A model generated the notes under the pieces. The model was not told the DNA's origin, ran no database searches, and was given only the letters and a program-made list of their open reading frames with translations. 64,000 bases of DNA, taken from assembly GCA_977017575.1 (NCBI GenBank), contig CDRNVI010000047.1:248001-312000 (forward strand), written 5' to 3'. The stretch comes from Paramoeba atlantica. Lineage: Eukaryota > Protista > Discosea. The translations under genes and the position numbers were made by a program. Shown here in pieces: positions 19,501 through 61,843 of this stretch; position 1 is the stretch's first letter; the number at the start of each line of letters is the position of its first letter.

Positions 19501-21321
19501 AGCGCTGTACGAACGAGCGTCTATACAAATTAAATGTGCAGAAGGACTCACGAAGTCTATTGAGATAGGTCGTGGTGTATTGCAGGGAGATACGCTTTCA
19601 CCTATTTTATTCGACTTGGCGATGGAGCTAGTTCTGCGTTTTGTCCGTTCAAGTTGCCCCGAATACGGGATCACGTGGAATGCGAAAGAAATTTTTCTAA
19701 AAGCCTTCGCAGATGACCTCACTATTCTGACAAATACCCCCCAGGAAATGCAGAATGCTACAAACGCACTCGTCAAAGTTCTAAGCGATATTGGGATGAA
19801 ACTAAACGTGAAAAAATGCCGGCTGCAACACATGGCGATGACGCAAGACTCTGGATATATGACACGCCGACCACAGATCATGATCGGCACGTCACCTATC
19901 CCACACATATGTGATAATGGTAGCACATTTTTAGGCATGACGCTCGCACCCGGTGCTCAACAAGGCAAGACACTCTTTCTAAAACTACGAACCCGTCTGC
20001 GAGCCTGGTTGCGTAATATATCTTCCAGCGCACATGACCTTCCCGCGCGCCTGTGGATATACAATAACGGCATCATCTCTCGTCTGCGGTATTCCTTCGT
20101 CGTGAACTCATGCCTTACCTTCAATCACGTACTTCGTCTACAGCGATGCGCCACACGCGAAATTCGGAAATGGTTAAACGTAGCGAAATCAGCAACTAGT
20201 GAGCTGCTCTATTCAGAGCATGGCTGGAATCTCATGAGTCTGTCAAAACTTTGGCTTCTTTCCACTGTGGGGACAATGGAACAAATGGATAAATCGCGTG
20301 ATCCCGAGGTCCAGCACGCTTTACGTGAGCGCATCAGGCGAGAAGCGAACAAAAGGAGAGCAGGATACATTCGCCCGCCGACGGATATGCACAGTACAAG
20401 CCATAGTAACGTCCGAAGACTCCTTGGAAGCGAATACGAGCGACACCTCACGGAAGCCGTCCAACGGCGTACTGCCGTAGCAGGACGATGGTTCAGAATC
20501 GCAACGGAAGCAGACCTTGCGAGAGTCTTCGCCGCCGCCCTATGCAACCTCAAGAGTGAATCGCTTTCGCGGTTCACATCCTCAGTGCTTACCGAGACGC
20601 CGCTCCCAACCAGGGCATCTCTTCGTAGGTGGGGCGTATCGACATGCGAGCGATAAATGTCCCATATGTGACACTGAGACACAAACTACGCGGCATATTC
20701 TATCTGGTTGTAGGAAGTCACTCGAACAAGGGAGGTATACCCTACGGCATAACATGGTACTACAGGCATTAGCGAACTCCGTACAACGATTCTCCTCCAC
20801 TAGTCAATGTCACTTCGATCTCCCCCACTTCCGCTCCACCCCCGCGTGGCTCACGAACCTTGATACTGAGCTACGTCCTGACGGATGGGTGAAACTATCT
20901 AACGGAGAAGAATACATTATAGAACTTACCTGCCCTTGGGAGGAGAATTTTGAGTTCGCACACGAGCGCAAAATAGAAAAGTACACGAGTTTATATCACT
21001 CTAGAAAACTCGACCATCCTACCACATTCCTACTCGTCTTCGAGGTGGGAGCGAGAGGCAAACTGCATATGTCGGCCCGAACGCTCAACTCTCTCTACAT
21101 GGGAAATGAAGAAGCGGTTGCAGTGTGTCGCCGAAATATGACGAGTAGCGCTCTCCGGGGAAGTTTCATAATTTTCCAGCACCGCGAGAACAAACAGTGG
21201 ATGGAGGTTAGTTCTGGGGAGTGAGTCGCTGACTGTCAGGTGATTTCAACGCGTTTTGTGCGCGTAATATGGAACTCCCATATTCACCGTCTGATCTCTG
21301 TAGAATATTTTCTACATGATA

Positions 21322-21348
<27 letters not shown>
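16475..21348 (+). mobile_element. full-length, decayed RLE-type non-LTR retrotransposon (HERO/NeSL-like) with a 5' SL exon and an (AT)n tail
   Basis: Reconstructed ORF 16542-21224: RT motifs NWRPISL, QKGF, DIKNAFGSIPH, LQGDTLSP, AFADD, LNVKKC; CCHC CPIC..HILSGC; RHN; endonuclease LRPD..IELTCPWE..ERKIEKY. In-frame stops at 18251, 18692 and 19400; frameshifts near 17440 and 20645. Confidence 0.93.
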
Positions 21349-21352
<4 letters not shown>

Positions 21353-21414
21353 CTTTCAACAATTTTGAAGGCAATATTGATTTTAGTGCGCTACCTGCAT
21401 CTCTTCGGACGATG

Positions 21415-21993
21415 ATAAAGATACAGTTTCTGTACCTTGTTGGTACTTTTTCCTTAGTTCATCCTTTCTTTCCCCGGCAACGGGCATACTCTTACTGTAT
21501 TTTCATGCCCGTTGCCGGCCGGCACTAAGGTCGGAACTGTCCCTCTTGTCGCTGAAGCAGGGGACGCGCTTTCACCACTTCACCCCTCCCCGACTCACTC
21601 CCCTGGAGTGAGTGTGCTTCCCCCTCTCGGCTTTTTTTCGACTTGTCTTTTTCCTCTCCGAGAGGGCCATGCGTCACGGTGGCCTCCCTTGAGGACCACT
21701 AGACGTGTCCTCCGCCGACGAGACTCGGCTCTCTGCACCTGGCGGTCGCCCAGCTCACCGCACCTCGGCTCTGTCGCAGCTCTCTGCACCCGGATTGCCC
21801 TCGAAACTGTAATATGGGGATTACGCATCCGGCTCTCTGCACCTGCACATGACAACCGAGCTCTCTGCACCTGGGACGCCAGCTCTCCGCACCCGCACAC
21901 CTCCGGCGAGGACGAAACCTCACATGGTCCACCCGTCGTATGCGGGATAAGGACATGGTGAGCAAATCTCTGCACTATAAGTGCATGATAAAA
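21415..21993 (+). mobile_element. SL-RNA-headed SINE-like element, type A, copy A1
   Basis: SL exon plus GTAC, a 14-bp hairpin at 21474-21518, internal CTCTCTGCACC repeats, and 3' ATCTC-TGCAC-tataa-GTGCA-TGATAAAA; interrupts an LRR frame. Confidence 0.88.
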
Positions 21994-22318
21994 CACATAC
22001 ATAACAATGTGAAATTGCGGGGCAACCTACAAATTGTAGGGGCACATGTGGACATGATCTACGATGTTTCCGAAACGGAAATTACAGTTAGCAACAGTTG
22101 TGGCGCGCTGGAACAATATATTATGATGTGATTGGTAGGGAAAAAGTAGGGGGGGGGGGAATTCTCGGTATGTTAACCTGTAACCCGTTTAATACATTAG
22201 TCTACCCTGTGTGAGTGGTATAGTCAACACCGTACACATTCTCCTATTTTTTACTCTCACACTTTCTTCACCCGTACTTTACCTAAGCTTTTATCTGTTC
22301 CCCCAACTCCGATATTTC

Positions 22319-22951
22319 ATGTCCGGCCTACGCTCGTGGGAAGGGGTGACATGTGACGAGGAGGATCACCCGGTTGCGCTGCGCTGGTGTGCCTTAGGAC
22401 TCGGTGGTACGCTTAGTTGGGATTACCTCCCCCAGCGTCTGGTACGCATTGACGTCAGTCACAACAACCTGCGAGGCCCAGTAAACCTCCGCGAGGCCCC
22501 AGAGTGTTTAGAAGAGCTCAATCTTTCCCACAATGCCTTCACGGGGGAATTTGATCTCACTCAGCTCCCCCCGGAGTTGAAAAAACTTTATCTCACCGAT
22601 AACCAATTTGAGGGAAAATGTGACCTGAGCTCACTACCCCCTTCGTTGACTCGGTTAAGTGTGGGATTCAATCATTTTTCTGGTGAGGTTGGTTTGAACG
22701 ATTTGCCGAGGACGTTGCAAAGTCTGATGCTGTCGTTTAACCAGCTGGAGGGGGAGTTGGATATGAGCGATTTGCCACGGGATATGGAGGAGCTCTACGT
22801 TAGGAACAACAAATTTAATGGTAAATGTGACCTTTCGGAGGTTGTTAAGCGAGGTCTTAAGGTGGATGTGTCATTTAACAGGTTTACGGAGATTGTGCAG
22901 TCAAACAATACGGCATCCGAGAATATACAAATTGGTCACCAGGACGAATAA
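22319..22951 (+). CDS. LRR protein (member 6; lacks the N-terminal VRG/PxEY motif)
   Basis: WEGVTC cap remnant plus regular LRRs; start uncertain. Confidence 0.82.
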   Translation: MSGLRSWEGVTCDEEDHPVALRWCALGLGGTLSWDYLPQRLVRIDVSHNNLRGPVNLREAPECLEELNLSHNAFTGEFDLTQLPPELKKLYLTDNQFEGKCDLSSLPPSLTRLSVGFNHFSGEVGLNDLPRTLQSLMLSFNQLEGELDMSDLPRDMEELYVRNNKFNGKCDLSEVVKRGLKVDVSFNRFTEIVQSNNTASENIQIGHQDE

Positions 22952-23254
22952 AATTTGTCATGTAAGGTAGTGGGTTTGTATTTGATCGTGATAGAATGGA
23001 ACGACATTTGATATATCTCAAACGTCAGGGAACAATGTAGATGGTAATTTCTTCCGCGGATAGAGATCGAAATGAGATCATACAAAAAATCCGCGAGATG
23101 CACGAAATCACACACATTACATCCGCAACCTATATTTGTACTTTTAAGACTGCAAAAAATGCAAAGCTTTTTTCTAGCGACAACAGTGAGACGACAATAG
23201 GTCGTAGAAAACCCAATCAATCTTTTTTTCTTTCCGTTCTGTACAACGAAGATA

Positions 23255-23833
23255 ATGAGTGCTTCTTCTGCTACACCACGAGCTGCAAAGGTGCGTGGCG
23301 GGGTGTTTCCCCAGGAATATCATCTTGCCCTTCTGGTGAAAAATATTTCAGTTTCTTTTTACGGCGAGAGGTGGAGCGAAAACACTCCAGCGTGCTCCTG
23401 GAACGGCATAACGTGTGATACGGACCAAAACATAATTAATGTTGGATGGTATAACTGCGGCTTGAACGGAAGTCTTCAGTGGTCCTATCTGCCTTCTACT
23501 CTTCTTACACTCGAGGTTGCTCTCAATTCACTCTGCGGAACAGTTTCGTGGGATATCCTCCCCTCCCAATTGGTGATACTTTCACTGCATCGTAATTATC
23601 TGACGGGTGAAGTGTTGCTACACAATTTGCCACATAGCCTGAAAGAAATGCACCTACAAAGCAACAATTTTTGTGGCAATGTCTATTTTCAAAATTTGCA
23701 CGAAGGGTTACAAGTGTTATACTTGAGTTTGAACCCTGAACTTTATGGTTCAATAGATTGTAACAAACTTCCGACCAGTTTACGTTACCGAGCATGGTAC
23801 GGCACAAACATTACACTCAAGAATGTTGACTAA
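23255..23833 (+). CDS. LRR protein (member 7)
   Basis: KVRGGVFPQEYHL..CSWNGITC plus LRRs. Confidence 0.9.
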   Translation: MSASSATPRAAKVRGGVFPQEYHLALLVKNISVSFYGERWSENTPACSWNGITCDTDQNIINVGWYNCGLNGSLQWSYLPSTLLTLEVALNSLCGTVSWDILPSQLVILSLHRNYLTGEVLLHNLPHSLKEMHLQSNNFCGNVYFQNLHEGLQVLYLSLNPELYGSIDCNKLPTSLRYRAWYGTNITLKNVD

Positions 23834-24117
23834 AATGAGATGTCTCAAAAAAATGTGACAAGGAGAAAATGGAAATCTGTGAAAAAAAGTAAAGTCTTTC
23901 AACAAATATTTACACTCAAGACAATTATTTGTGTAACAAAAAACAGGAAAACAACAATTTGTGAATTTTTTATTGTGCAACAATTTCAGAAGTTGCACAA
24001 TAGAAAATTCACAAATTTTTGCGAACGTTGTACTGCTCCCTCTTTCTTATCTTTTCATTCGCAACCCATCTTTCCCCACACTTTTCCTCTCTCCCACTTC
24101 CCCTTACCCCTACCCCC

Positions 24118-25443
24118 ATGTCCGAAACCCAACACGCCATCGTTCACAGTTTCACCCAATGGTTACGCCAACAAAACCTCCCCGAGCCCACTGCCGTCTC
24201 TGAACTTTGCGAAAAAATCCACAACCTCTTTCACCTCCCTCCCGGCTTCAACCCCCCGAATCCGGTTGCCCTCCAGCACCTGTGGGATCACGCGAGTGAC
24301 GCCCCGGAAGCGAATGGATCTCACGGCTCCAAATCTTCTTCTTTTTCGTTGTCTTCTTCTGAGAGTAAACTTCAGCTCACGCCGCAGTCCCCCGAGGAGG
24401 CCTCCAAGCTCCGCGACTTCCTCTCCATCCTCCACGACCGGGGGTACTTCAAAGGGGCGGACCCCGGGACCCCGGAGCACGAATCCCGGCTCGACAAAGC
24501 GAGGCGCAAGTTCTTCGCGCGGCAGAACCCCTACGAGGGGCTGGACGCGGAGCAGTGCAAGGCGAGGGGGAACGCGGCGATGGCGACCGCGGCGCACAAA
24601 GAGGCGCTGGGTTTCTACACCCGCGCGATTGCGTTGGACTCGGGTAACCATTTGTACTTTGCGAACCGCTCCGCGGCGTACATACAAATGAAGGAGTATG
24701 GCAACGCGGTTACGGATGCGGAAAAGGCGATTGCCTTGGAGCCGGGGTACGCGAAGTCGTATGCGCGTCTCGGGACGGCGTATTTTTATGAGGAGAAGTT
24801 TCAGAAGGCGTCGGAGGCGTATGCGCGGGCGGTGGAGCTGGACCCGCAGAATGCGAGTTATGGGGAGGATCTGCGTCAAGCCCGGGAGAGGGTGAAAAAA
24901 GCGGAGGAAGCTGCAGCGGGGAATAATCCGTTCGGGAGTTTACTGTCGGGGTTAGGAGGAGGAGGGGCTCCGGGATCTGCTGGGTTTGATATGAATCAAC
25001 TGATGGGGATGATGAATAAGCCGGAATTTATGCAAATGGCCTCCCAAGCGATGCAAAATCCGCAGTTTACGTCGTTGATGCAAAACTTTGCGTCACAAAT
25101 GGGAAGTAATGCCCCTGGGATGGGTGACATGCAGCAATTTCTTTCGTCGATGGGAAATAACGCTTTAATGGGTGAGAATGGCAACGCGCTGTCTAACGCT
25201 GCGGAAGGGGGAGATAGCTCAGGGACGGTACAAACCCCGTTTGGCCCGCTGGATGCGCAAGCGTTAAAGCAGCTGCAGGAGGAGGAGGTCCACGGCAACC
25301 CTCGCATGGCGGAGATTGTGGAAGATGTGCGTCAAAATGGGCCCGGGGCGTTTATGAAGCACATGAATGATCCCGAGGTCATGGCCATCATGTCGAAATT
25401 TACCACGCTGTTCTCTCAGAGAGGAGAACCGAAAGAAGAGTGA
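24118..25443 (+). CDS. SGT: small glutamine-rich TPR co-chaperone (SGT)
   Basis: Three TPRs (AEQCKARGN..YFANRSAAY..YAKSYARLG), M/Q/N-rich STI1/DP-like C-terminus. Confidence 0.85.
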   Translation: MSETQHAIVHSFTQWLRQQNLPEPTAVSELCEKIHNLFHLPPGFNPPNPVALQHLWDHASDAPEANGSHGSKSSSFSLSSSESKLQLTPQSPEEASKLRDFLSILHDRGYFKGADPGTPEHESRLDKARRKFFARQNPYEGLDAEQCKARGNAAMATAAHKEALGFYTRAIALDSGNHLYFANRSAAYIQMKEYGNAVTDAEKAIALEPGYAKSYARLGTAYFYEEKFQKASEAYARAVELDPQNASYGEDLRQARERVKKAEEAAAGNNPFGSLLSGLGGGGAPGSAGFDMNQLMGMMNKPEFMQMASQAMQNPQFTSLMQNFASQMGSNAPGMGDMQQFLSSMGNNALMGENGNALSNAAEGGDSSGTVQTPFGPLDAQALKQLQEEEVHGNPRMAEIVEDVRQNGPGAFMKHMNDPEVMAIMSKFTTLFSQRGEPKEE

Positions 25444-25735
25444 AAAGAAGGCGGTAGTGATGTTTGTGTTATAAAACAAATGCTTTACAAAAGATTACAA
25501 TGGTCATTTACTTTCTCATACGGGATAGGTTCCGAGTATCGGATGGAAAACTGCAACAGATACGATAGTATCCCTTATGCTATTTTGTGTTTTTTTAACT
25601 TTATATTCGGCAAAAAGTATACAACTAAGCTAGATATTTTTACAGGCTCGACGCAGAACGCGTGGCTAAACTCGTGGATTATCTTTTTGCTTTTCTTCTT
25701 AATATTTGCATTTCGTCGATTATTTCTTCTAACTC

Positions 25736-26569
25736 ATGCTCTTGAGCTGCCTTTTGTCGGACGTCTCCGAACCCTCCCTGAAACGGATAAAATCGAACAC
25801 AGACGTTGAATCTTCAGATGTGCTATCCTCATATAAGGCTCCTGCATCTAGCCTACGTGCTGGTAAAGTCAGTGGCATGAATCTCCCGCAGGAGTACAAA
25901 TTGGCGCGTGTCATTGAGGACATACAGGTACAAACCAAATATCCCTCTTGGAATGAACACACCCATGCGTGCAAGTGGTACGGAGTATACTGCAACCAAG
26001 AGGGTAAGGTGAATAAAATAGACTGGAAAGTATGTCGCTTATCCGGTACCTTACATCTTTCGCATCTCCCATCCTCGCTATTGCGATGCGAAATGGCATC
26101 TAATTATTTGAAGGGTGAGATTCCACTGGAAGAGCTCTACGATACAACTCCAAAGCTTTACTATCTTGATTTATCAGGCAACAAATTTGGTGGAGCAATT
26201 GATTTAAATTTTGTACCCGCTCGCATGAAATTTTTTGTTCTTGGAAATAATGTTTTGAAGGGCAATTTGCATTTAAGTTTGCTCCCTCTGGAAGCAGAAG
26301 AAGTTTTTTTTCAAGATAACTTCTTTAACGGAAATCTAGACTTAACTTCTCTTCCGAAAAATATAAAATATTTGGATTTGAGAAATAATAAGTTTTCAGG
26401 TGTCATAGATTTGTCACATATCCCGACTTCACTGGAGGGACTGCTAATATGTGGTAACGCCATGCTACGTGGAACAGTGGAAATAGGTACGCTTCCTGAA
26501 CAATTGCGCCGCATGTCCTTTGCATATACAAATATAGACGTTATTGAAGATGAGGGATATGCATCATGA
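25736..26569 (+). CDS. LRR protein (member 8)
   Basis: KVSGMNLPQEYKL..PSW..CKWYGVYC plus LRRs. Confidence 0.9.
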   Translation: MLLSCLLSDVSEPSLKRIKSNTDVESSDVLSSYKAPASSLRAGKVSGMNLPQEYKLARVIEDIQVQTKYPSWNEHTHACKWYGVYCNQEGKVNKIDWKVCRLSGTLHLSHLPSSLLRCEMASNYLKGEIPLEELYDTTPKLYYLDLSGNKFGGAIDLNFVPARMKFFVLGNNVLKGNLHLSLLPLEAEEVFFQDNFFNGNLDLTSLPKNIKYLDLRNNKFSGVIDLSHIPTSLEGLLICGNAMLRGTVEIGTLPEQLRRMSFAYTNIDVIEDEGYAS

Positions 26570-26955
26570 ATATGATATCATGTAAAAAAATATAGAATGA
26601 TATCTTGTAAACAAGATGTAATCTTTGTCTACCGTGTAGTCTTCAACATGAAGCGCGCAGCAGTAGTGACTTTTATGTTAAAAACAACCACCGCGTTTAA
26701 CGAAATGGCTTAAATGGAAAAATTTGGTATGGGCCACACAAATGGCCATAATGGTCTGTTGAGCAATTTGTTTTTGTGTGAAGTATGCTAGTGCATGGAC
26801 CACTTTGTATTCTATTTTATGTTTAAACCTTGCAGCTGGAGCTTTTGAAGGATGTGTTAAGCAAAGTGAGTAAAGAGCAACACTTATCATCTCTTACACA
26901 ATCCATCAGTAATAGGATAAATCAATTCTTGTATTCTCTCTTTCCTTTGTAATTC

Positions 26956-27399
26956 ATGCCTGAAACAGTCTCCATTCAGGACCTGACTCCGGAACAACTC
27001 TCGCAATTAAAATCACAAATGGAAAACGACATCCAAGGCCTCGAACAGGCTTTTCTGGCCCTAAAACAAGCTTCAGCGAAGTTTGCTAATTCCCGCAGTG
27101 CATTGGATTCGCTTCTTAAAAAGCATCAAGGTGTCACCCAGGGCGAGATGTTTATTCCTGTGACAAGTTCGCTGTATGTTCCAGGAAGGATATCCGATCC
27201 CTCTCAGGTGACAATCGATCTCGGCACGGGGTATTACGCTCGTATGGCTACGTCCGAGGCTGTTGCGTACTATGAACGAAAGTGTGCCATGTTAGATCAA
27301 GAAATGCAGAAAGTATCTGAAAGTGCGAACATGAAAGTGCAACAGAAGGACCAAGTTACAGAGGCTCTACAACGAAAATGGGCATTGGCTGCGGCATAG
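26956..27399 (+). CDS. PFDN5: prefoldin alpha subunit 5
   Basis: EMFIPVTSSLYVPGRI..VTIDLGTGYY beta-hairpin between two coiled coils. Confidence 0.88.
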   Translation: MPETVSIQDLTPEQLSQLKSQMENDIQGLEQAFLALKQASAKFANSRSALDSLLKKHQGVTQGEMFIPVTSSLYVPGRISDPSQVTIDLGTGYYARMATSEAVAYYERKCAMLDQEMQKVSESANMKVQQKDQVTEALQRKWALAAA

Positions 27400-28131
27400 A
27401 CTATTGTGAGTGCGTTTAAAATACATTTCTGGTTTGTACGACGTCGTTTTCTACATGTTTTGCTGGGTACTTCTTATGTACAGGAGAAATAACCTCATCA
27501 GATAACATAACAGAATCTGGGAAGGATAACAGAGTCTGTTCCGCGATGCGGTACATGTAGGATTTGACGCGACAAAACACAGTCTAAAAGGATATCACAA
27601 TGGATTAGTCAAGATATTCAAGTTGCTGTGATACATTTTGGTATATTTTGGCATTCACAAAACATTCTTTATTCGCGTCGTCTATTAAAGGTATACAAAA
27701 TTTACACTATTACTTGTGCATTTAGTATTTCCACTACGATGAATGTGATTTTCACAGATCGCACGACAGACTCGCTACGTCTGCCTTATCATTCCGTCAT
27801 GTTTAAGTTCTCCGACACAGCGGGCGAAAACAGAAAGGCCGGGAAAGTAAGGGGTGTGGCATTACCCTTGGAGTACGAGCTTGAGCGTTTGGTAAGTAAC
27901 ATAGTGAATCCGCTTCCTTCTTGGAACACCTCCGTACCTGCACACCAGTGGGAAGGGGTTGATTGTTCGGGCGGAAGGGAAATCTTGGGGTTTGTGGCGA
28001 AAGGGAAAAGATTGATGGGTTCATTTCAATGGAGTACACTGCCTAGGTCTCTACTTGAATTTTCAGTGTACAACAACAAGCTTAGCGGGGAATTAGACCT
28101 CGTAGGCCTTCCACCGCGTTTGATTTCGTTG

Positions 28132-28700
28132 AAGATACAGTTTCTGTACCTTGTTGGTACATTTTCCTTTAGTTCATCTTTTCTTTCCCCGGCAACGGGC
28201 ATAGTCTTACTGTTTATATGCCCGTTGCCGGCCGGCACTAAGGCCGAAACTGTCCCTCTTTCTCGGCGAAGTAGGGGACGCGCTTCCACCCCATCACCCC
28301 TCCCCGGCTCACTCTTTGATTGAGTATTCTTCCCTCCCCGTATTTCTTACTTTCGCGCCTTTTCCTTCCCGGGGAGCCATGCGCCATGGTGGCCTCCCTT
28401 GAGCACCACTGGGCGTGGCTCTGCCTCGTCTTATCGCGAGGCAGCGGTCGGTTGCAGTGCGCCCCTCCGGCTGCGTAAAGAGGTGGTGAGTTGCCTGGAC
28501 CACCTCTACCGACTGGGACCGAGTCGGTTGCAGTGCACCCCTCCGGCTGCGCAAAGAGAGGGCGAGTTGCCTGGACCCCCTCTACCGACAGAATCCGTGC
28601 TAAACCCCCTTGGTGCGACATCCGTCATTACGGATTGTGCCGATGATATCGGCTGTCGCATCAAGGGCTGTATCTCTGCGCCAACGAGCGCATGAGCATC
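28132..28700 (+). mobile_element. SL-RNA-headed SINE-like element, type B, copy B1
   Basis: AAGATACAGTTTCTGTACCTTGTTG|GTAC, same head hairpins as A1, duplicated ~64-nt internal unit, 3' ATCTC-TGCGC-caacga-GCGCA-TGA. Confidence 0.88.
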
Positions 28701-28770
28701 AAACGTCGTACAATCAATTTACGGGTAGTATTGATCTTTGTCATCTTCCTGCAACCTTACTTTCGTTGAT

Positions 28771-29208
28771 TCAGGGGACGCGCTTCCACCCCTTCATCCC
28801 TTCCCGACTCACTCCCCTGGAGTGAGTGTGCTTCCCTCTCTCGGCTCTCTTTCTCGTGTCTACCTTTCCGAGGAGGTAATGCGTCACGGTGGCCTCCCTT
28901 GAGGACCACTAGGCGTGTCCTCCGCCGACGAGACTCCCGGCTCTCCGCACCTGGGGGTCGCCCAGCTCTCTGCACCTCGGCTCTGTCGCAGCTCTCTGCA
29001 CCCGGATTGCCCCCGAAACTGTAATATGGGGATTACGCATCCGGCTCTCTGCACCTGCACATGACAACCGAGCTCTCTGCACCTGGGACCCCAGCTCTCT
29101 GCACCCGCACACCTCTGGCGAGGGCGAACCCTCACTTGATCCGCCCGTCGTATGCGGGCACGGACTTTGTGAGCATAATCTCTGCACTATAAGTGCATGA
29201 ACGAACAA
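28771..29208 (+). mobile_element. 5'-truncated SINE-like element, type A, copy A2
   Basis: Starts at CAGGGGACGCG inside the head and aligns to 21557-21990; joined flanks give TTG ATA CTG as in the paralogue, so no TSD. Confidence 0.88.
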
Positions 29209-29723
29209 ACTGTCAGTGAATAAGTTCTGCGGTGATGTAACGCTTACTAATCTGCCTTCTAGAATAGAGAGTCTTTCGCTTCGTAACAACGCCGAGCTCA
29301 CGGGTACAGTGCACGTACGCTTACTACCGTCAAGCATGAGGTGCAAAGCATTTACTGAAACTAAAATTTTGCAACTGGACTGATCACTGAAATAGCACAT
29401 ACTGTAGGCACATACTGTAGCACATGTACTGTAGGACTCATTGCGTGATTGTGAAAATTTTATTCATAAAAAGTAATTTTTTTCGAAATCTGCTTCTGTA
29501 TCGTACTTAGAGAGTTTGGAACTTCAGATAGCCTTCTACAAAGCTTTTTTCATGTGATTAATTCATGTGTTATTAATTTCATGTGTTAATTAAATTAATA
29601 CGTCTTTTGTTGACATAACTTAGTTTCTCCCCGGTAATATCGTAATTGAATATTTGACTGTAATTAAAATTGCTGTATGAAAAATTTGTTGCACGGAATT
29701 ACCAATTGGAAACGGACTCCTTT

Positions 29724-30383
29724 ATGATCGTAGCTTCTATTGCATTCAGTGTTATTATCACAGATTGTACGGCAAGTTCTTTACTTCCCTCTTATCATCC
29801 CAAAGCATTCGAGTTCTCTGACACAGCGGGTGAGAGCCGAAAAGCGGGACGAGTAAGAGGTGCTTTACTTCCCGCAGAGTACGAGCTTGAGCGTTTGATA
29901 AGTAACATAGTGAATCCGCTCCCTTCTTGGAATGCATCTGTACCTGCACACCAGTGGGAAGGGGTTGATTGTTCTGACGAAGGAAATATATTAGTGTTTG
30001 TGTCCGAAGAAACTAATTTACGTGGCACACTTTTGTGGGATGCACTACCGAGATCTCTACATCGATTCTCAGTATTCACTAACCAACTTACGGGGGGGAT
30101 TGATCTCGTAAATCTTCCGCCACATTTATCTGGTTTTGACGTATCTTACAATCAATTTACGGGTAGAGTTGATCTCTCCCACCTTCCTTCAACATTATCT
30201 TCCTTGATATTGTCAATGAATAAGCTAAGTGGGCAACTAACTATTGCCAATCTTCCCTCCGGACTTCTTAGTCTTTCACTTCGTCACAACGCTGAACTTG
30301 TGGGAACGATTTCCGCGCAACTGCTACCTGAAAGCCTGACGTACAAGGCCTTTCAAGGGACAAAACTTCAAATACAGAATTGA
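29724..30383 (+). CDS. LRR protein (member 10)
   Basis: RVRGALLPAEYELERLISNIVNPLPSW plus LRRs. Confidence 0.9.
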   Translation: MIVASIAFSVIITDCTASSLLPSYHPKAFEFSDTAGESRKAGRVRGALLPAEYELERLISNIVNPLPSWNASVPAHQWEGVDCSDEGNILVFVSEETNLRGTLLWDALPRSLHRFSVFTNQLTGGIDLVNLPPHLSGFDVSYNQFTGRVDLSHLPSTLSSLILSMNKLSGQLTIANLPSGLLSLSLRHNAELVGTISAQLLPESLTYKAFQGTKLQIQN

Positions 30384-30462: not shown

Positions 30463-31341
30463 TTTAGGCTCTTCGTTAAACGCGGTGGTTGTTTTCAACT
30501 TAGAAGTCACTCATGCTGCGCGCTTCGCGTTGAAAACTACCACCGCGTATAACGAAGAGCCTAAAAAAGAAAAATTGGCTAGGAAAGCTGAAGAAAACGG
30601 AAGGATTTGAGCCAAAAATGGCCGATTTTTAGGTAAAAATGGGGTCATTTTTGGGTATTTTTGCTCTCAGAGCACTAAATTCGACTTTTTCGTGTGGGAA
30701 ATCACTCGTACGCATGTATTCGAGGCTACCAAACGTATTGGGTGGAGGATGCGGCTCCAACCACACCATTCTTTTGACACAAAAAGACCCCTTTGGGTCC
30801 GAAAATTACTTTTTCGCATTTCTTGGTCAAAAACGAGTCATTTTCGGAGGCGTACCACGGCTTCAAGAAGCTACATCTCGCGAAAACAATGGCGTAAAAA
30901 GCTAATATAGGTCCCAAACTAGCAAAATACAATAGGCGAAACAATTTTGGAAAAATACTTTTTTTACCATTTGTTTCGTCAAGTTGAAATTTTTTTCAAA
31001 AAACAAAATCCGAAAAAATCCGAACTTGACGGACCTGTCCTACGCATACGAGGGGGGGTCACCCCCGGGTAGGGGGGTGGAAAATGCGCGCTAAGACCCC
31101 GGCTACCACTTCTGCGCTTTTATTTCGAAAAATAATTTTTTCAAAAAAAATTCGTGCGGTATGCCCCCCCCATGGACCCCCCAAGGGTCCGATTTTTTTT
31201 GATAATGTTTGGACCACCGGAGCCCCTTTTATATTTTTTTCTTCTATTATATTACTGTGTTCCTCTTTATATTTTCACTGTTTTTGTTCACTTTTTTTTC
31301 AATAATCGAGGGTAGAGCGGTAGTTTTACAACCACCGCAAT
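30463..31341 (+). mobile_element. ~880-bp non-coding element with a long terminal hairpin and a related short hairpin at the other end
   Basis: ~35-40-bp stem AGGCTCTTCGTT..CAAC / GTTG..AACGAAGAGCCT; other end GCGGTAGTTTTACAACCACCGC; full copies recur at 54782-55688 and 63117-64000. Confidence 0.8.
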
Positions 31342-36519: not shown

Positions 36520-36802
36520 CACTTTTTTATTTAGACACAGATGATTACTCTCGTGTGTGTTAGTTAAAGTACTGTAAAATGATCCAGTTTTCCAAGCAAA
36601 AAAGCCTTACTTGTGGTATCAAGGCAATGAAAAAATCGCATGATCTCATTTGATCTCAGTTTTTTACTCATTTATAAAACGTTCCCATAAAAAGCTGTTC
36701 ACTACGGATATTATGGATGCGAAGTTTGTTCCTATTCAAATGCCAATAAGTTTACTTGTCCTTTTATCGGAAGCCTCTTGACATGGTCTTTATCGAAGGT
36801 AC

Positions 36803-38152: not shown

Positions 38153-38472
38153 GCTCTTACATGCATTATCCATGCGTTCCTATCCTTGAAAGTTTTATTA
38201 TTTTCCAATGTTAATAATCCAGAAAAACGTATAAGAACGGCTCCCGGTGTCATCCGCACGGTTGAAATCACAATACTAACTTATTGAAGACTTGCATTCA
38301 AATACTTGCACGACTGTCATTGCCGCGATTTATTCATTATTTTCTTTGATTTCTTTTTTTTATCTTTTGCTCTTGAGTCTTCTTCACTTTCTTTCGAACC
38401 CCACTTACGGACTATAAAATAAATTTTGGCGTACTTTTGATGTCTTTTCGTTCATTTAAGTAATTCTTTTTC

Positions 38473-38880
38473 AGGCTCTTCGTTAAACGCGGTGGTTGTT
38501 TTCAACTTAGAAGTCACTCATGCTGCGCTCTTCGCGTTGAAAACTACCACCGCGTTAAACGCAGAGCCTAAAAAAGAAAAATTGGTCAGGAAAGCTGAAG
38601 AAAACGGAAAGATTATAGCCAAAAATAGCCGATTTTCGGGTAAAAACGGGGTGATTTTCGCGTATTTTTGCTCTCAAAGCACTAAATCTGATGTTTGCGT
38701 GTGGGAAATGACTCGTAGGGATGAAGCAAAGCCTACCGAACGTGTTGGGTGGAGAATGCGACTCCAACCACACCATTCTTTCGACACACAAAGGCCCCTT
38801 GGGGTCCGAAAAATACTTTTTCACCTTCTTTGGTCAAAAATGTGTCATTTTGAGGGGCGCACCACCGCTCGAAGAAAGGA
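38473..38880 (+). mobile_element. partial copy of the long-hairpin element
   Basis: Hairpin at 38473-38575 plus body aligning to 30570-30870. Confidence 0.8.
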
Positions 38881-38934
38881 TACACCTTGTGAAAGGATGT
38901 ACCTTGTGAAAACAACGGCCGAGAAATATTAGTA

Positions 38935-39113
38935 TTTTTTCTTGTGAAAATGTGTTAAAACGCTTCTTTGGGTTATCCCCGAGGCCCTCAACATGCAGAC
39001 ACCCACCCCCTACCCCCTATACGCCTCCTGTGGGGCTCCCGAGCCAAATCTCTCTTACTGGGGGTCAGCCCAAAACTGGCTAGGTGGGGTACCTTACTGG
39101 GGGAAGTATACGG
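38935..39113. repeat. right part of a CCGTA-type MITE
   Basis: Shares segments with 11345-11392 and, inverted, with 15705-15735; ends TATACGG|TA. Confidence 0.55.
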
Positions 39114-39407
39114 TAAGCTTAAAAACTCATAGGCTGGTCCTGTACTAATCTCGTTTTACGAACGCTATCTAGGGTAACAAACGGTGGGAAACGCGCTAGC
39201 TTTTTTTGAGATCTGTTGAATGCCGAAGGAATTGGGTCAAAATCTCTTACGGTGTGCTCTGGAGCCTGGGGGTGGGGGGGAGCAAGCCAAGAGCTGGACT
39301 GTGTATGATTGTGCTGCTTTGTTTCTAAAACAATAAGGCGAGTGAGTCTGATACCGTTTATGTCTTTTCCGTTTTATTTTGATTTTGAGTTTATATTCCT
39401 GCTTCTG

Positions 39408-42400
39408 ATGAAAATAGAAGGACTATTGCAACAGTCGGTGAGGCATTACTACTCTTTGGATCCTTCCATGAGTGTAGAAGCGGCCTTGCAATTCATTTAT
39501 CGAAATGCACAAGCGCGTCTTCGTCAGATGGTGGGGCACACTCTTGCTGCTGAGAAGCAGTCAAGCGACAGTTCTGCGCAGCCCGGGGAAGAGACCCTTC
39601 GGGATGGAAGTCTGACCTTAGAAGCCGAAAAGGCGCTTTCAGAATTTAATGAAGCCGCTTATTTGGGTCAACCTTCGAAACATCAGGAATGTTATAACTA
39701 CATTGAGCCCATTGCCAAGCATCACGCAATGTACGAAATTTTCGAAGGAGATTTACTAAATTGGTACATCGCTTTGGGAATCAATGCCTTGCTATCCGGA
39801 TTCTCAAGGCGACAACTTGAAGCGACGGCAAGAGGCATTGGGTTACCGACGAAACACATTCAGCCTGCAGCACGATGGACGTTGACATGCTTTATTTCCC
39901 GTTTATCTTTGGACGGGACGTTTTGTAATCTTGTTTCTATTGCTCACCGACCTGAGACTTCACATCCCACGAGTGAGCTTGCACAACCAACGGAGCCTTC
40001 GGAATTATCCGTAGAGGCGCCGGTTTCAAGCGATCTAGCCTTTAATGCACAACCTTTAGCACAGTCACTCGTCATGGACTCAGATCCATCCAATTTAAAA
40101 GCATCAACTGCTACCCAAGAATCTGCACTGCCAACTGAATCAACACCCCCACCCTCCAAAACCGCACTTCTTACAAATCTCGCTCCTTCTACGTCTTTTT
40201 CATTAGCCTCTTCTGCCAATCTTTCGGCCACTGGAAAAGACAGCTCCTTTGAGACACCCCCGGCACGACCCTCTCCTACCTCACAATTGCGCTCTTCTCC
40301 GTTAAGTTTGTTTCCCGAAACCCATCCCTCCCCGAATGATGCAACTCCTACCAGCATCAACCCCCCTTCCAGCCGCAAAAGAACATTTCTTGCCAAAGTA
40401 GACAACACTTTTGGATTGTCCTCGACCAAAAAAAACAGGATAACAAAATCCCCCACATCATCCGAAACCCCAGAAAAGGGACAAGAAACCAAAACAACCC
40501 CTACCCGCCCGTCGAAAGCTCGCAACTCTCGCACCCTCAAAGACACCAACCCCAAACCTCCCCGTCCAAGCCATAAAAAACAAAAAACAACTTCACTCCA
40601 ACCCAACACCACATTCTCTACCCCTTCACCAACGCAACCTAACAACAACAACAACAACAGCCCCTTCGTCTCCCTATCCACCATAACAACCCTTATCCCC
40701 TCCGAGACTCCCCGTCCCCTCTCTACACCCCCCATGGCCGCTACCCCTACACCCCCTATGGCCACTGCGGCCTCTACCCCCACAAGTCCTATCGCCACTA
40801 CCCCCACAAATACCATCGCCACTGCGGCCTCTACCCCCACAAGTACTATGGCCGCTCCCCCCACCCCCGATGAGCTCATCGCCCTCTGCACGGACCCCAG
40901 CCGCTCCGTCCCCGTCCACTGGGTCACCTCCGCCGACCCCCCCGTCCCCGCCGCCACGGCCCACGCCATGCTCACCGCCCCCGCCCGCGTCCCCCACGCT
41001 ACCCTGGTGGCGCACCGGCCCCCGATCGGGCCCGACACCTCGGCGTGGCAGCTGCTGCAGTGGTACCGGGTGGGGGAGCTGGAGGGGTACGCGCGGGGGA
41101 GGGGGGTGGGGTGCGGGGGGGCGGGGAAGCGGCGGGGGAGGCTGGTGGGGGCCCTGCTGAGGTACTGGGGGAAGGGCGGGGGGAGGGGGAGGGGGGGGAG
41201 GGAACGGGGGGGGAAGGGGGAGGTGGTGGGTGGGGAAGAGGGGGAGGTGGTGGGTGGGGAAGAGGGGAGGGGAAAGGAGGAGGGGGGGGAAGGGGAAGGG
41301 GAGAAGGGTTGTGTAGGGGAAGAGAGGGAGGTGGTGGGTGGGGAAGAGGGGGTGGTGGTGGGTGGGGAAGAGGGGGTGGTGGTGGGTGGGGAAGAGGGGG
41401 TGGTGGTGGGTGGGGAAGAGGGGGTGGTGGTGGGTGGGGAAGAGGGGGTGGTGGTGGGTGGGGAAAAGGGGAGGGGAAAGGAGGAGGGGGGGGAAGGGGA
41501 AGGGGAGAAGGGTTGTGTAGGGGAAGAAAGGGAGGTGGTGGGTGGGGAAGAGGGGAGGGGAAAGGAGGAGGGGGAAGGGGAAGGGGAGAAGGGTTCTGTG
41601 GGGGAAGAGAGGGAGGTGGTGGGTGGGGAAGAGGGGGTGGTGGGTGGGGAAGAGGGGGAGGTGGTGGGTGGGGAAGAGGGGAGGGGAAAGGAGGAGGGGG
41701 GGGAAGGGGAAGGGGAGAAGGGTTGTGTAGGGGAAGAGAGGGAGGTGGTGGGTGGGGAAGAGGGGGTGGTGGGTGGGGAAGAGGGGGTGGTGGTGGGTGG
41801 GGAAGAGGGGGTGGTGGTGGGTGGGGAAGAGGGGGTGGTGGTGGGTGGGGAAAAGGGGAGGGGAAAGGAGGAGGGGGGGGAAGGGGAAGGGGAGAAGGGT
41901 TGTGTAGGGGAAGAAAGGGAGGTGGTGGGTGGGGAAGAGGGGAGGGGAAAGGAGGAGGGGGAAGGGGAAGGGGAGAAGGGTTCTGTGGGGGAAGAGAGGG
42001 AGGTGGTGGGTGGGGAAGAGGGAAAGGAGAAGGGGGGAGGGGAGAAGGGTTCTGTAGGGGAAGAGAGGGAGATGGTGGGTGGGGAAGAGGGAAAGGAGAA
42101 GGGGGAAGGGGAAGGGGAGAAGAGTTCTTCTCGGGGAGATGAGGGGGGTGGGGAGGAAGTGGAAAAGGGGGAGAACGAGGGGGGGAAGTCTTCTCGGGAA
42201 GAAGGAGAACTCGAGAGGGAGGAGGAAGAAGAAAAGGGGGGGAAAGAGGTTGTAGTGATTTCGCAGGATGTGTCGCAAGATTCGGCGTTGCGAGAGGTAT
42301 CGCAAGGCGGTATTTTTTCGGAAAATGGTGGGGAGAAGGAGCGAGGCGGGGAGAAGGAGCGAGGCGGGGAGAATGGTACAGAGGCGGGTGCAGGGGTGGT

Positions 42401-42434
42401 GGAGATGGATCACATTTTGGGTGATCCGGCTTAG
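39408..42434 (+). CDS. hypothetical protein with P/T/S-rich middle, possible SAP-like motif and G/E/V-rich tandem-repeat tail
   Basis: ~1000-aa ORF; globular N-terminus; [32 protein letters not shown]; EGVVVGGE and [13 protein letters not shown] repeats. Confidence 0.7.
41190..42130 (+). repeat. G/A-rich hierarchical minisatellite (GGTGGTGGGTGGGGAAGAGGG units)
   Basis: 21-nt units nested in larger ~400-nt duplicated blocks. Confidence 0.9.
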
Positions 42435-42809
42435 CAGGGGGATCGACTGCAGAGAAGCTGCATCCCGAAGGACTAGGTGAGTCGGAAATGAGAGACTCAA
42501 ATGTGCACGACGTTGAAGGAAAGAGATCAATGCCCGAAAGCGAGAGTTCTCCTCCAGACCTTCATTGAAAAGAGGTTTGCATGGGATCCCTTGTCTTAAA
42601 ACTCTCTCTTGTCTTAAAATCTTTAAAAGGAGATTTTTTTGTTAAAGTACCATATTTATGTTTTCTGAAAATGGTATCATTTACATTATTTTGAATACAT
42701 ATCTTAAAGAGTAGTTCTGGAAAATCTCGTATTTGTGATGTTATACATGTTCTGGTTTGCAAGATTAAGATTTCAAGATACGATTGTCAAGAGCCTCCGA
42801 TAAAAAGAC

Positions 42810-43960
42810 GTCGAAGTTCCAGTCCTACCATCGATTATCTTTCGTCTTCGCAATCTACAGGAGTCCACCTGAGCACGACATGCTGAGGGTGGTATGTCCG
42901 CCCTTTCCATCTTGACCCTCTCCCACAACTCTCGGACACCTCTTGGGGGATCATAGTGTGCTGCAAGGCGCCGCTTGAGTCTCAATGGGATTAAAGTCAG
43001 GGGATTGCGGGGGCCACCGCACAACTTCAATCCTGGTACCCCGAAGGTACCGTTGCGCACAACGGATTGCTCTTGGGGTCGTTATCTTGTTGGGAGACAG
43101 CCTTGGAGGATTTAGACCGATACTTTCGATAGAGGGGAAAAGATTCTCAAGAATCTTCAGGTTCCCTTGAACCAGAGTTGTTTTTTTCATGCACTTATAA
43201 TGCAGAGATTTGCCTCACTACATGTCCTTACCCCGCATACGACGGGTGGATCACGCGAGGGTTCGCCTTCGCCTGTGGCAAGTGGGTGCAGAGAGCTGGC
43301 GTCCCAGGTGCAGAGAGCTCGGTTGTCATGTGCAGGTGCAGAGAGCCGGATGCGTAATCCCCATATTACAGTTTCGGGGGCAATCCGGGTGCAGAGAGCT
43401 GCGACAGAGTCGAGGTGTGGAGAGCTGGGTGACCGCCAGGTGCGGAGAGCCGGAAGTCGTAGCGAAGGACACGTCTAGTGGTCCTTAAGGGAGGCCACCG
43501 TGACGCATTACCTCCTCGGAAAGGTAGACACGAGAAAGAAAAGCCGAGAGAGGGAAGCACACTCACTCCAGGAGAGTGAGTCGGGGAGGGGTGAAGGGTG
43601 AAAGGCGCGTCCCCTGCTTCAACGAAAAGAGGGACAGTCCTGACCTTAGTGCCGGCCGGCAACGGGCATATAATTACAGTAAGACTATGCCTGTTGCCGT
43701 GGAAAGAAAGGATGAACAACAAGGTACAGAAACTGTATCTTTATACACATACCCCACACCGCTTCAGGACATACGTCCAAATCATGATGTCCTCCCCTCC
43801 ATATTTCACCGTAGGGATCACCCCTTTTCCACCTAGTTCCTCCCCAGGAATCCCTCATGCACAAAGACCTCCCCGTTTGAAAGCGCGAGATATTGGTCTC
43901 GTCCGACCACACAACTGGGGCCCAGTACTCATGGGCTGTAGCAAAGTACTATTTTTTACA
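42810..43960 (-). pseudogene. Tc1/mariner (DDE) transposase remnant interrupted by SINE A3
   Basis: Minus-strand motifs VVWSDET, PTVKYGG..IMIW, QQDNDPK, WPPQSPDFNPIE, ELWERV; several frameshifts. Confidence 0.85.
43178..43744 (-). mobile_element. SL-headed SINE-like element, type A, copy A3 (spliced form)
   Basis: Reverse-strand SL exon at 43717-43744 joined directly to TTCATCC; the 15-nt GT..AG segment of A1 is absent; same 3' hairpin plus A-rich tail. Confidence 0.88.
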
Positions 43961-44183
43961 AAGATCTACAAAATGCAACAAAAATGAGCAAAAACGGATA
44001 AAATAAGAGAATCAAAATTTCCCAGGGGGGCGCACTTCTGAGAAGGGGTGTATTTCCGTTTCGTGTTTCTGGGGACTATACTATTCGCAAAGAAACCATA
44101 CTTTGAATGTGAATAATAACCTTGAGGGTGGTATACACAGTCACAAACCTATTCTCAACCACCCACATTTTCACACCCCCACC

Positions 44184-45005
44184 ATGTACCCCCTATCCCT
44201 CGCGGACTCTGCCCGACCCGCACGGGTCCGGGGGGCTCAGCTTCCCCCTGAATACGACCTCGACCGGTTCCTTGGCGATATCTCTCCTCGTCATCCCTCC
44301 TGGACCCTCTCCCGTCCCGTGGACCAGTGGTCCGGGGTGTACCTGGACAAGGAACGCCACCACGTGTGTCGTATCCGGTGGGATGACCGCAAGCTACGTG
44401 GTCGCCCCTTGTGGACCCACCTCCCTCCCACCCTCACCTCCCTAACCCTTGGCACCGCCCAAGGGGGGAATGCCCTGGACGGGGCTGTGGGGTTCGCCTC
44501 CCTTCCCCGCTCCCTGTGTGAGCTGCAACTCACCCATAACCGGTTCAGTGGGCCGTTGGCAACCCGGAACCTCCCGCATGAGTTGCGGGTGCTCGCTGCG
44601 GTGGACAATGTCCTCGAGGGGACACTAGAGTTGGCTGAGCTCCCTGTGGGGATAAGGGAGGTGTTGTTGTCCCGGAACCGGTTCCACGGAGCCGTGAATC
44701 TCTCCGCTCTCCCGTTTAAGATTCGTATGTTGACACTGTCGCATAATGCGTTCACAGGGTCGGTGGGGTTCTCGGCGTTGCCGCAGTCTATGGAACAGCT
44801 TACGCTGTCGCATAACCAGTTAAGTGGGGAGGTGGAGATTCGAAATCTCCCAGCAGGGTTTATGCGACTGCTTGCTTCCCACAATCAGTTTAGTGGAGTA
44901 GCTGTGCTGGAGAAGATTCCTTCCGGTGTGATTCGGGTGGATTTGTCGTGGAATAAGGGTCTACGCGCGCCGAAGGAGTTCGTGCCCTCTTGTGTGGAAT
45001 TTTGA
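44184..45005 (+). CDS. LRR protein (member 12)
   Basis: RVRGAQLPPEYDLDRF..PSW..WSGV plus LRRs. Confidence 0.9.
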   Translation: MYPLSLADSARPARVRGAQLPPEYDLDRFLGDISPRHPSWTLSRPVDQWSGVYLDKERHHVCRIRWDDRKLRGRPLWTHLPPTLTSLTLGTAQGGNALDGAVGFASLPRSLCELQLTHNRFSGPLATRNLPHELRVLAAVDNVLEGTLELAELPVGIREVLLSRNRFHGAVNLSALPFKIRMLTLSHNAFTGSVGFSALPQSMEQLTLSHNQLSGEVEIRNLPAGFMRLLASHNQFSGVAVLEKIPSGVIRVDLSWNKGLRAPKEFVPSCVEF

Positions 45006-45194
45006 AGCGTTGCAGTTTGTATTTGTTTAATGGGGTAAAGGTGATCATTTCAAGGTGAAGGAAAAACCCTGAAGTAAAATTAGCGCTTTGGAAATACATA
45101 TTGTATCCGCCGACAATCCGCACTTTTTTATACTAAACGTTACAAGTACGATATTACTTTTTCGTTTCATTCATCAGAACTTTGCTTCATATGT

Positions 45195-46555
45195 ATGCTC
45201 TGTCACACCTCTGACATTTCGACACAGCCTAGACTGCCGTCTAAGGTGCGAGGTGCAGAATTGCCTCAAGAATACGATCTCGCACGATTCATTGAGCATA
45301 CTCAAAATACAGATCCCTCATGGACCACATCAACAATTGCGTGTAATTGGCGTGATGTAGAATGTGATGACGGCATGCACGTTACTGACCTTAACTGGAA
45401 ACGTCCTGGGGAAATTGCGGGAACGCTGCAATGGAATTGTCTACCCCACACATTACTCAGGTGTTACATATGGTACAGCCGTTTGACAGGAAGGGTGGAG
45501 CTTGAGGCACTGCCACGCCAGCTTGTTGTCATGCATAAAGATACAGTTTCTGTACCTTGTTGGTACATTTTGCTAGCCCTTCCTTTCTTTTCCCGGAAAC
45601 GGGCATACATTTTCCTTTTAAATGCCCGTTTCCGGCTGACGGCTAGCGGAAACTGTCCCTCTTTGTCGTGGAAGTAGGGGACGTACTTCCGACTTTTCAC
45701 CCCTCCCCGGCTCACTCCTTGAGTGAGTTTTCTTCCCTCCCCGGCTTTCTTCTTCTCGCGCCTGTCTCTTCCCGGGAGCTATGCGCCATGGTGGCCTCCC
45801 TTGAGGACCACTGGGCGTGACTCTGCCTTGCATTATCGCGAGGCAGCGGTCGGTTGCAGTGCGCCCCTCCGGCTGCGTAAAGAGATGGTGAGTTGCCTGG
45901 ACCACCTCTACCGACTGGGACCGAGTCGGTTGCAGTACGCCCCTCCGGCTGCGTAAAGAGAGGGCGAGTTGCCTGGACCCCCTCTACCGACAGAGTCCGT
46001 GTCGAACCCCCTTTGGCGACATCCGTTGTGGGCGGATTATGTGCCGATGATATCGGCCGTCGCAGTAAGGGGATTATCTCTGCGCCAAAGAGCGCATGAT
46101 AAACAAAAATTTGGCATAACTCATTTGTTGGAAACATAGATTTAGCACTTTTGCCTAGCTACTTGGAAACAATGTTTCTGACCAACAACATGTGTACGGG
46201 AAGCATAGACATGACGCACCTTCCTGCTAAGTTATTATACCTTGATCTATCTTACAACGCATTTTCAGGAACTGTGGATCTAGCAAGCTTGCCCCGCGGC
46301 TTGTGTTCTCTCAATTTGGCTCAAAACGACCTTACAGGGACTATAAATCTCCAGCAGTTTCCTTCAACAATGACAAGCTGTCAATTCCAACTTAATTCTT
46401 TCAGTGGTCTTGTAAAGTTTGACAAACTTCCACAAAGCTTGTTGTTATTGCGCTTAAATGGCAATTCGGAGCTATACGGTGAACTAAAGAACTCTGATCT
46501 TCCTCAAGCAATGGCCGAATTCGATTATTGTGGGACAAACATTTGTTTAAAGTAA
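45195..46555 (+). pseudogene. LRR gene (member 13) split by SINE B2
   Basis: KVRGAELPQEYDL..LPRQLVVM to 45534, then IWHNSFVGNIDLALLP..TAA from ~46107. Confidence 0.9.
45535..46106 (+). mobile_element. SL-RNA-headed SINE-like element, type B, copy B2
   Basis: Full 28-nt SL exon plus GTAC; body aligns to B1; 3' ATCTC-TGCGC-caaaga-GCGCA-TGATAAACAAAA. Confidence 0.88.
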
Positions 46556-61833: not shown

Positions 61834-61843
61834 ACAAATGTTG

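Follow-up and report, generated by a model that had tools for sequence, protein, structure and literature searches.

A covarying hairpin signature at the 3' ends of a retrotransposon family and its short non-coding partners

We describe a 3'-terminal signature shared by a long interspersed nuclear element (LINE) and by two types of short elements, A and B, in a 64,000-nt stretch of DNA (hereafter the window; assembly GCA_977017575.1, Paramoeba atlantica, contig CDRNVI010000047.1, positions 248,001 to 312,000). The window's LINE and all five of its short elements terminate in (A)UCUC-U[4-6 bp stem, 3-6 nt loop]A-UGA, which is completed by an A-rich (A/C-rich) tail of about 8 nt after the UGA, beyond which some copies have a microsatellite-like run, (AT)n or (TCA)n. 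Comparison with further copies makes it probable, in our judgement, that this signature forms the 3'-terminal portion of a cis-acting RNA module which belongs to a family of LINEs with a restriction-like endonuclease (RLE) and is also present on their short partners. An original prediction, made from the window sequence, had taken the shared 3' signal as evidence of a partnership between the LINE and short interspersed nuclear elements (SINEs); the partnership gains support here, because a covariance model built solely from LINE tails matches the SINE 3' ends.

Terminal signature and elements of the window

When the window sequence was re-read, all six predicted sites were present and the three differing stems given for the LINE, type A and type B each paired. 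The LINE signature is ATCTC-TGTAGA(A)-tatt-(T)TCTACA-TGA followed by TAAC and (AT)n (21294-21319, plus strand; AUCUC-U GUAGA(A) uauu (U)UCUAC A-UGA in RNA). Type A elements have ATCTC-TGCACT-ata-AGTGCA-TGA at 21966 and 29178, and TGCATT/AGTGCA at 43209-43187 (minus strand), where the mismatch reported originally is a C-to-U change that retains a G.U pair, and type B elements have ATCTC-TGCGC-caa(c/a)ga-GCGCA-TGA at 28672 and 46076. Seven matches to the loose pattern ATCTCTG..TGA are present in the window, where 0.95 would be expected.

Element boundaries were set by self-comparison of the window, which identified the elements as real repeats, and types A and B each form a tight subfamily (87-96% identity). 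The LINE (16475-21349, plus strand) is a non-long-terminal-repeat (non-LTR) element with a reverse transcriptase (RT), a C-terminal zinc knuckle and an RLE, as judged from its open reading frames (ORFs) and from RVT_1, CCHC and RPD..E..K motifs. It starts with a 28-nt remnant (16475-16502) of about nt 12-39 of the euglenozoan spliced leader (SL), and its ORF (16541-21224) has three stops and two frameshifts in the window sequence. Within the first 30 codons or so lies a 5' box, an imperfect hairpin of about 45 nt centred on GGCCUCCCUCGAGGACC (16570-16612), which is common to the SINE cores, and hairpin I (ACGCG-uuuugug-CGCGU, 21248-21266) precedes the terminal signature. Among the short elements, A1 (21415-21996, plus strand) is full length, with the SL remnant at 21415-21442, the box at 21667-21709, hairpin I at 21930-21948 and the signature at 21966-21988. 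B1 (28129-28703, plus strand) is also full length (SL remnant about 28132-28156, box 28377-28419, hairpin I 28619-28636, signature 28672-28695, tail GCAUCAAA), and A2 (28771-29208, plus strand) is 5'-truncated and keeps the box (28877-28919), hairpin I (29142-29160), the signature (29178-29200) and the tail ACGAACAA. The same modules are found in A3 on the minus strand (43177-43744; SL remnant 43744-43717, box 43510-43468, hairpin I 43248-43230, signature 43209-43187 with one G.U) and in B2 on the plus strand (45535-46109; SL remnant 45535-45562, box 45779-45821, hairpin I 46020-46038, signature 46076-46099).

Covariation of the terminal hairpin

Relatives were retrieved with pieces of the LINE protein from one ENA assembly of the same genome, ERZ24900291, giving 12 loci (L001-L012, 228 kb; 292 kb with the window). 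The signature was found at 11 further LINE 3' ends, 65-110 nt past the stop codon, and the 12 signature-bearing LINE copies, including that of the window, have proteins only about 47-78% identical and about ten different stems (UGCAGG/CCUGUA, UGCCUU/AAGGCA, UGCAGU/ACUGCA, UGCCU/AGGCA, UAGUGU/ACACUA, UAUCU/AGAUA, UGCUAUU/AAUAGUA, UACAGG/CCUGUA and UGCAG/CUGUA among the further copies). Four more type B tails lie outside the window (two in L003, one each in L005 and L011). Decayed copies were present as well (L004, L003b, and L011 with UAG replacing UGA), and those of L004 and L011 show the loss of constraint. At L003:10811-10937 a LINE 3' end is separated by 8 nt from a downstream type B tail of 96 nt, which is 5'-truncated and bears a slightly decayed signature of its own; the arrangement looks like a second insertion at the same site.

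In the alignment of 20 tails, 99% of the cells were paired (72.8% in shuffles), 26 cells had double changes (7.4 in shuffles) and the covariation score was 0.597 against 0.188, a value reached by 0 of 500 shuffles; when the partner was slid by 1-3 columns, pairing fell to 11-73%. The LINE tails taken separately gave 55 of 55 cells paired (100%), 15 double-change cells and a score of 0.873 against 0.279. The original prediction had named the disappearance of covariation in a larger alignment as an outcome that would speak against it; instead the covariation became stronger. The outer U-A pair, UCUC and UGA are invariant, and the 4-6 inner pairs covary freely. Five wobble cells are G.U on the sense strand and one is C.A, the latter in a truncated dead fragment; G.U wobbles in the sense strand suggest a structure of sense RNA rather than of duplex DNA. 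Minimum-free-energy folds contained the terminal hairpin at nearly every 3' end.

Specificity of the signature

A covariance model built from LINE tails only gave six non-training matches at E<=10 on both strands of the 292 kb, all of which were SINE 3' ends (A1 35.2, A3 31.5, A2 26.7, B2 22.5, and the type B copies of L005 and L003a 19.6 and 16.2 bits). Over 268 kb, the model of all tails returned, besides the 20 sites on which it was trained, no more than two weak matches, and it also picked up the tail of a LINE copy of L012 that had been held out (E 3.7e-4; distance from the stop codon, 65 nt). Searching both strands of the 292 kb for the structural pattern CTC-U[>=5 bp hairpin]A-UGA gave 20 occurrences, against 1.37 +/- 1.1 in dinucleotide shuffles. 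The motif could also have proved common away from element ends, a second outcome against which the idea had been staked; the models matched only element 3' ends, a few weak extras (E >=0.5) aside.

The weak model matches of 13-16 bits (window 61947-61973, L011 15619-15659, and L012 19298, 175-228 and 2058) were treated as chance. One of them, the 16-bit match at 61947-61973, abuts a copy of an uncharacterised dispersed repeat family that is present in both orientations at 83-97% identity (30463-31341, 38464-38883, 54782-55684, 61831-61948, 62591-62719 and 63118-64000), and it is probably a chance match.

Hairpin I and the 5' box

The signature is one of at least three structured modules that the elements share. 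A second one, hairpin I (NCG-[UYNUDUG]-CGN), is found 13-38 nt before UCUC in LINEs and in short elements of both types, with a stem of 3-5 bp closed by C-G and G-C and a conserved U-rich 7-nt loop, UYNUDUG; examples besides that of the window LINE are CCCG-ucguaug-CGGG (type A) and AUCCG-ucauua-CGGAU (type B), and its covariation score was 0.437 against 0.139. The 5' box, an imperfect hairpin of about 45 nt centred on GGCCUCCCUNGAGGACC, occupies nt 95-135 or so of the LINEs and forms the core of every short element. Its cells were 93.5% paired (87.7% in shuffles, 25-52% in slid controls), six pairs had double changes against 2.1, and compensatory changes were evident in CCUC/GAGG, CCUU/AAGG and CUCU/AGAG and, at the base, in CGUC/GACG versus CGCC/GGCG. 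In the sequence sampled, these elements are the only places where hairpin I and the 5' box occur together.

The 3' module of type A is nearest to that of the L008 LINE, with the same hairpin I stem (CCCG/CGGG) and a terminal stem one compensatory pair apart. For type B, the resemblance to the L003 LINE is limited to the stretch immediately before UCUC. Neither short-element type has the window LINE as its best match.

Target site

Several insertions lie in one fixed phase of a 72-nt coding repeat for leucine-rich repeats (LRRs), LP..L..L |.LS.N.F.G. A2 sits precisely between GTTGAT and ACTGTCA in an otherwise intact LRR repeat, and B1 is inserted precisely in the same phase of the 72-nt unit before it, both with no duplication or deletion. 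The LRR motif N.F.G begins 16-23 nt after the UGA in 8 of 21 elements (38 nt with an intervening (AT)n tail). Insertions in the LRR phase include the window LINE, the LINEs of L001, L008 and L009, and both short-element types, while the lineages L002, L005, L006, L010 and L012 were inserted elsewhere than in the LRR repeat. Within the window, LRR flanks of insertions are at 28696-28770, 29201-29300 and 21350-21414, and intact LRR repeats at 7363-7662, 11704-12003, 29992-30291 and 49084-49383. The tandem arrangements of the LINE followed by A1 and of B1 followed by A2 are explained by insertion into successive LRR units. The family has a sequence-specific target, as is typical of the RLE group, and a protein-coding repeat is unusual as a dedicated retrotransposon target.

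LINE protein and integrity

RVT_1 was matched by pieces of the window LINE ORF and by P0061, and full-length ORFs of 1417-1474 aa were present elsewhere in the same genome. The C-terminus has CPIC..H..GC and then RPDG..IIELT.PWE..AHE.K..KY, conserved in eight family members and in a relative from the nematode Globodera. By these features the LINE has the architecture of an RLE-type non-LTR element, with RT, a CCHC knuckle and a predicted nuclease of the PD-(D/E)xK type, the nuclease being recognised by motif only. Pfam found no apurinic/apyrimidinic-like endonuclease (APE) domain (Exo_endo_phos) in the LINE pieces, and on the N-terminal and nuclease pieces RVT_1 alone was matched, the nuclease and the cysteine repeats matching no model. 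These repeats, four of the form CX3CX5-6CXHXCC (for example CAYKCRDKTSCLHACCK) in the N-terminal third of the ORF (about 17200-17900), may be a DNA-binding or targeting domain. The nearest named relatives are annotated generically as R2, and the LINE may belong to the CRE, NeSL or R2 clade.

The disruptions of the window LINE at 17420, 18251, 18694, 19400 and 20641 all read differently in contigs of runs X1/X2, and run X4 agrees with the window at 18694. Since the X1/X2 contigs have neither the stops nor the frameshifts, there is an allele or copy whose ORF, of about 1560 aa, is uninterrupted; alternatively, the disruptions are assembly errors in the window.

Spliced-leader remnant and heads of the short elements

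The five full-length elements of the window share an identical 28-nt start, ATAAAGATACAGTTTCTGTACCTTGTTG, which aligns without gaps to nt 12-39 of the SL of Diplonema papillatum (PMC10161547, supplement) and of Trypanosoma brucei. In run X5, an RNA contig opens with this sequence and runs on into an unrelated mRNA; we therefore regard the sequence as the organism's own spliced leader. Neighbouring loci encode editing helicases of the REH2 type. Given the SL and these helicases, the DNA was read as euglenozoan, related to D. papillatum and not identical to it, since the SL differs. Every full-length LINE or short element (window, L001, L005, L009-L012) begins with the 3' 26-28 nt of the SL, from about SL nt 12, and across seven short-element copies this remnant has two substitutions in all, compared with differences of about 15-20% in the next 75 nt. 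L010 has an additional 10-nt relic, TACCTTGTTG.

The label SINE in the original prediction held in part: the elements are short and non-coding and carry the LINE 3' motif, but the canonical SINE head is missing. ARAGORN detected no tRNA head in the window or in A1, and in the same two sequences Rfam gave nothing at the gathering threshold and only noise at E<=10. Where SINEs have a polymerase III head (tRNA, 7SL or 5S), the head here consists of the SL remnant and LINE-like 5' sequence. Of the traits of a stringent LINE/SINE pair, an autonomous RT-encoding LINE and a short non-coding element with the LINE 3' motif are both found.

An SL-RNA-derived head was considered. The first 103 nt of the short element fold like SL RNA, and the 75 nt past the exon equal the intron length of D. 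papillatum. A DNA contig of run X1, with its loose end at 21443-21445, has ..TTGGTA and then TGAGAAGCTTCG.. (as GTATGAGAAGCTTCGAAC..), the first 12 nt of which are the SL intron start of T. brucei, GTATGAGAAGCT; this GTATGAGAAGCTTCGAAC contig probably represents the organism's genuine SL RNA gene, and neither the window nor the fetched loci contain an SL RNA gene. The short-element sequence after the SL exon, GTAC(A/T)TTTTCC, differs from this contig, and the T-rich stretch after the SL remnant aligns loosely between LINE 5' untranslated regions (UTRs) and short elements. Because of this mismatch and this alignment, it seems more likely that the short elements are SL-capped like the LINE than that their heads derive from SL RNA. 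A simple internal deletion of the window LINE was also rejected, since BLAST recovered the SL remnant, 5' box and tail only and no contiguous LINE sequence. The short elements look like the 5' and 3' cis modules of the LINE placed around type-specific filler. A single metagenome scan for the junction of SL and SINE gave 0 matches.

The heads of the short elements also contain a hairpin of 14-15 bp, CCGGCAACGGGCAU..AUGCCCGUUGCCGG (21473-21517, 28189-28231 and 45591-45640), with a compensatory change from CAAC/GUUG to AAAC/GUUU in B2, in the L005 copy and in a third variant, L011:14131-14600. Elsewhere in the window, 41167-42175 is a G/A-rich degenerate tandem array (periods 12, 24, 48 and 387, GC 0.62, strong purine skew) within long ORFs on both strands, which is unrelated to the hairpin finding.

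Proposed mechanism and alternative explanations

From comparative evidence only, we infer RT recognition of the signal, the start point of target-primed reverse transcription (TPRT) and mobilisation in trans. The module would be ordered as hairpin I, a spacer of 13-38 nt, UCUC, hairpin II (the terminal hairpin), UGA and a tail of about 8 nt. The RT encoded by the element would bind this bipartite module on the sense RNA, the endonuclease would nick the target (for several lineages and both short types, the fixed phase of the 72-nt LRR coding repeat), and priming of reverse transcription would take place a few nucleotides 3' of hairpin II. Short elements with the same module, the 5' box and the SL remnant would be copied in trans. 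A further, speculative extension, which we think has a low chance of being right, is a three-part recognition of the 5' box and hairpins I and II, in which the stems would serve as a lineage code against cross-mobilisation among ten or more coexisting RLE LINE lineages, the short elements would parasitise matching lineages, the SL remnant would provide a functional 5' end where gene-specific promoters are lacking, and the LRR repeat would be a dedicated landing site.

The hairpin might instead be a signal for RNA 3'-end formation or stability in transcripts cut from polycistronic precursors, as LINEs and SINEs both need a defined 3' end. Individual terminators are absent from euglenozoan genes, about 8 nt separate the hairpin from the end of the element, and covariation proves an RNA structure, not the identity of the binding partner. 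A generic host signal would, however, be expected at the ends of host genes too, and in the 292 kb the models match element ends only; moreover, hairpin I with its conserved loop and the 5' box occur only in these elements, which fits an element-specific protein better, and we regard the 3'-end signal as improbable. Mere ancestry, in which the tails were acquired from a LINE by recombination or template switching and persist by recency with no present function, draws on the 87-96% identity within types A and B, so that conservation within a type says little. Yet LINEs at about 50% protein identity retain UCUC, U-A and UGA while their stems change in compensating pairs, and none of the 55 cells of the LINE tails is unpaired. 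Neutral decay should have disrupted pairs, as happened in the decayed L004 and L003b; we find a history of ancestry alone very unlikely. Least credible of all is a palindrome acting at the DNA level, as a cruciform, an endonuclease site or a site of second-strand synthesis. The stems are palindromic in DNA and adjoin the insertion junction, but a G.U on the sense strand is a C.A mismatch in the complementary strand or cruciform arm, the invariant UCUC and UGA flanks are asymmetric, and the LRR target sites have no such palindrome.

Several points weigh against a cis-acting module recognised by the LINE machinery, which remains our preferred explanation. The stem register was derived from the same sequences in which the pairs were then counted, the aligned copies are related to one another, the SINE sample is nine tails of which several are nearly identical, and the genome sample is 292 kb only. 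Type B tails score weakly with the LINE-only model (16-22.5 bits), no sampled LINE matches the type A or the type B stem exactly, and no RNA coverage of the LINE or SINEs was seen in a single small RNA run. UCUC and UGA, being invariant, may either pair or be read as sequence.

Comparison with known systems

R2 is a LINE with a single ORF, in which RT is followed by CCHC and RLE, and it inserts precisely and site-specifically in 28S rDNA; its RT binds a structured 3' UTR fold of about 250 nt in which sequence drifts and structure is kept, and its 5' end is a ribozyme like that of hepatitis delta virus. Short internally deleted partners of R2 (SIDEs) reportedly retain both the 5' and the 3' ends, according to the Eickbush laboratory. 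The present family is similar to R2 and SIDEs in its domain order, precise insertion, kept 3' structure and non-autonomous partners with both ends, and differs from R2 in its target (an LRR coding repeat), its SL-remnant 5' end and a 3' signal of two small hairpins. CRE1/CRE2, SLACS and CZAR are RLE LINEs within spliced-leader RNA genes and split the SL exon at about nt 12. They are likewise euglenozoan RLE LINEs tied to the SL, and the remnant described here also starts at about nt 12; in contrast to them, the SL piece here is only at the 5' end of the element, followed by the element's own UTR, and the flanks are LRR or other DNA. In the elements examined, no SL sequence was found after the 3' ends and the 5' flanks were mutually unrelated or LRR. 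As SL gene sequence is not present on both sides, these elements are not CRE/SLACS insertions. In D. papillatum, scattered partial SL exons and SLACS-like ORFs have been reported (PMC10161547).

In eel UnaL2 and zebrafish ZfL2, a 3' stem-loop is required and is recognised by ORF2 (PMC1636434, PMC4176376). As in UnaL2/UnaSINE1 and ZfL2 (PMC1636434, PMC4176376), the stem-loop tail is common to the LINE and its short partner and stands before a short or repetitive terminus. Those systems belong to the L2 clade and have APE and tRNA-derived polymerase III heads, whereas the elements described here have RLE, are largely site-specific and carry the SL remnant and LINE 5' modules; the 3' signal here is also bipartite and shares no sequence with the fish tails. 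Its endonuclease and SINE head set the family apart from the L2-type systems, of which it is not a member. The ingi/RIME and L1Tc/NARTc pairs (PMC3383444, PMC5814959) come from the same phylum and likewise include a short non-coding partner with the 5' and 3' ends of the LINE; unlike the present family, they have APE, a poly(A) tail and the Pr77 promoter/ribozyme, and no hairpin-UGA signature has been described for them. In our literature search, neither this system nor a SINE with an SL head turned up. The principle itself has precedents, and the RLE-type, LRR-targeting, SL-capped family varies it in a new way.

Significance

Recognition of the LINE 3' end by its own RT decides which RNAs are copied into the genome, and the cases that are well characterised are mainly those of vertebrate L2-type elements and of R2 in insects. 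The signal described here is compact (about 70 nt, two hairpins) and shows unusually clear natural covariation across many coexisting RLE lineages, so that the natural stem variants form a ready-made mutational series for work on RT-RNA binding and TPRT. It is also useful for annotating elements in diplonemid-like genomes, in which repeats make up about half of the DNA (PMC10161547). For the organism itself, it offers a lead on how retroelements may obtain defined ends and a safe landing site under polycistronic transcription and trans-splicing.

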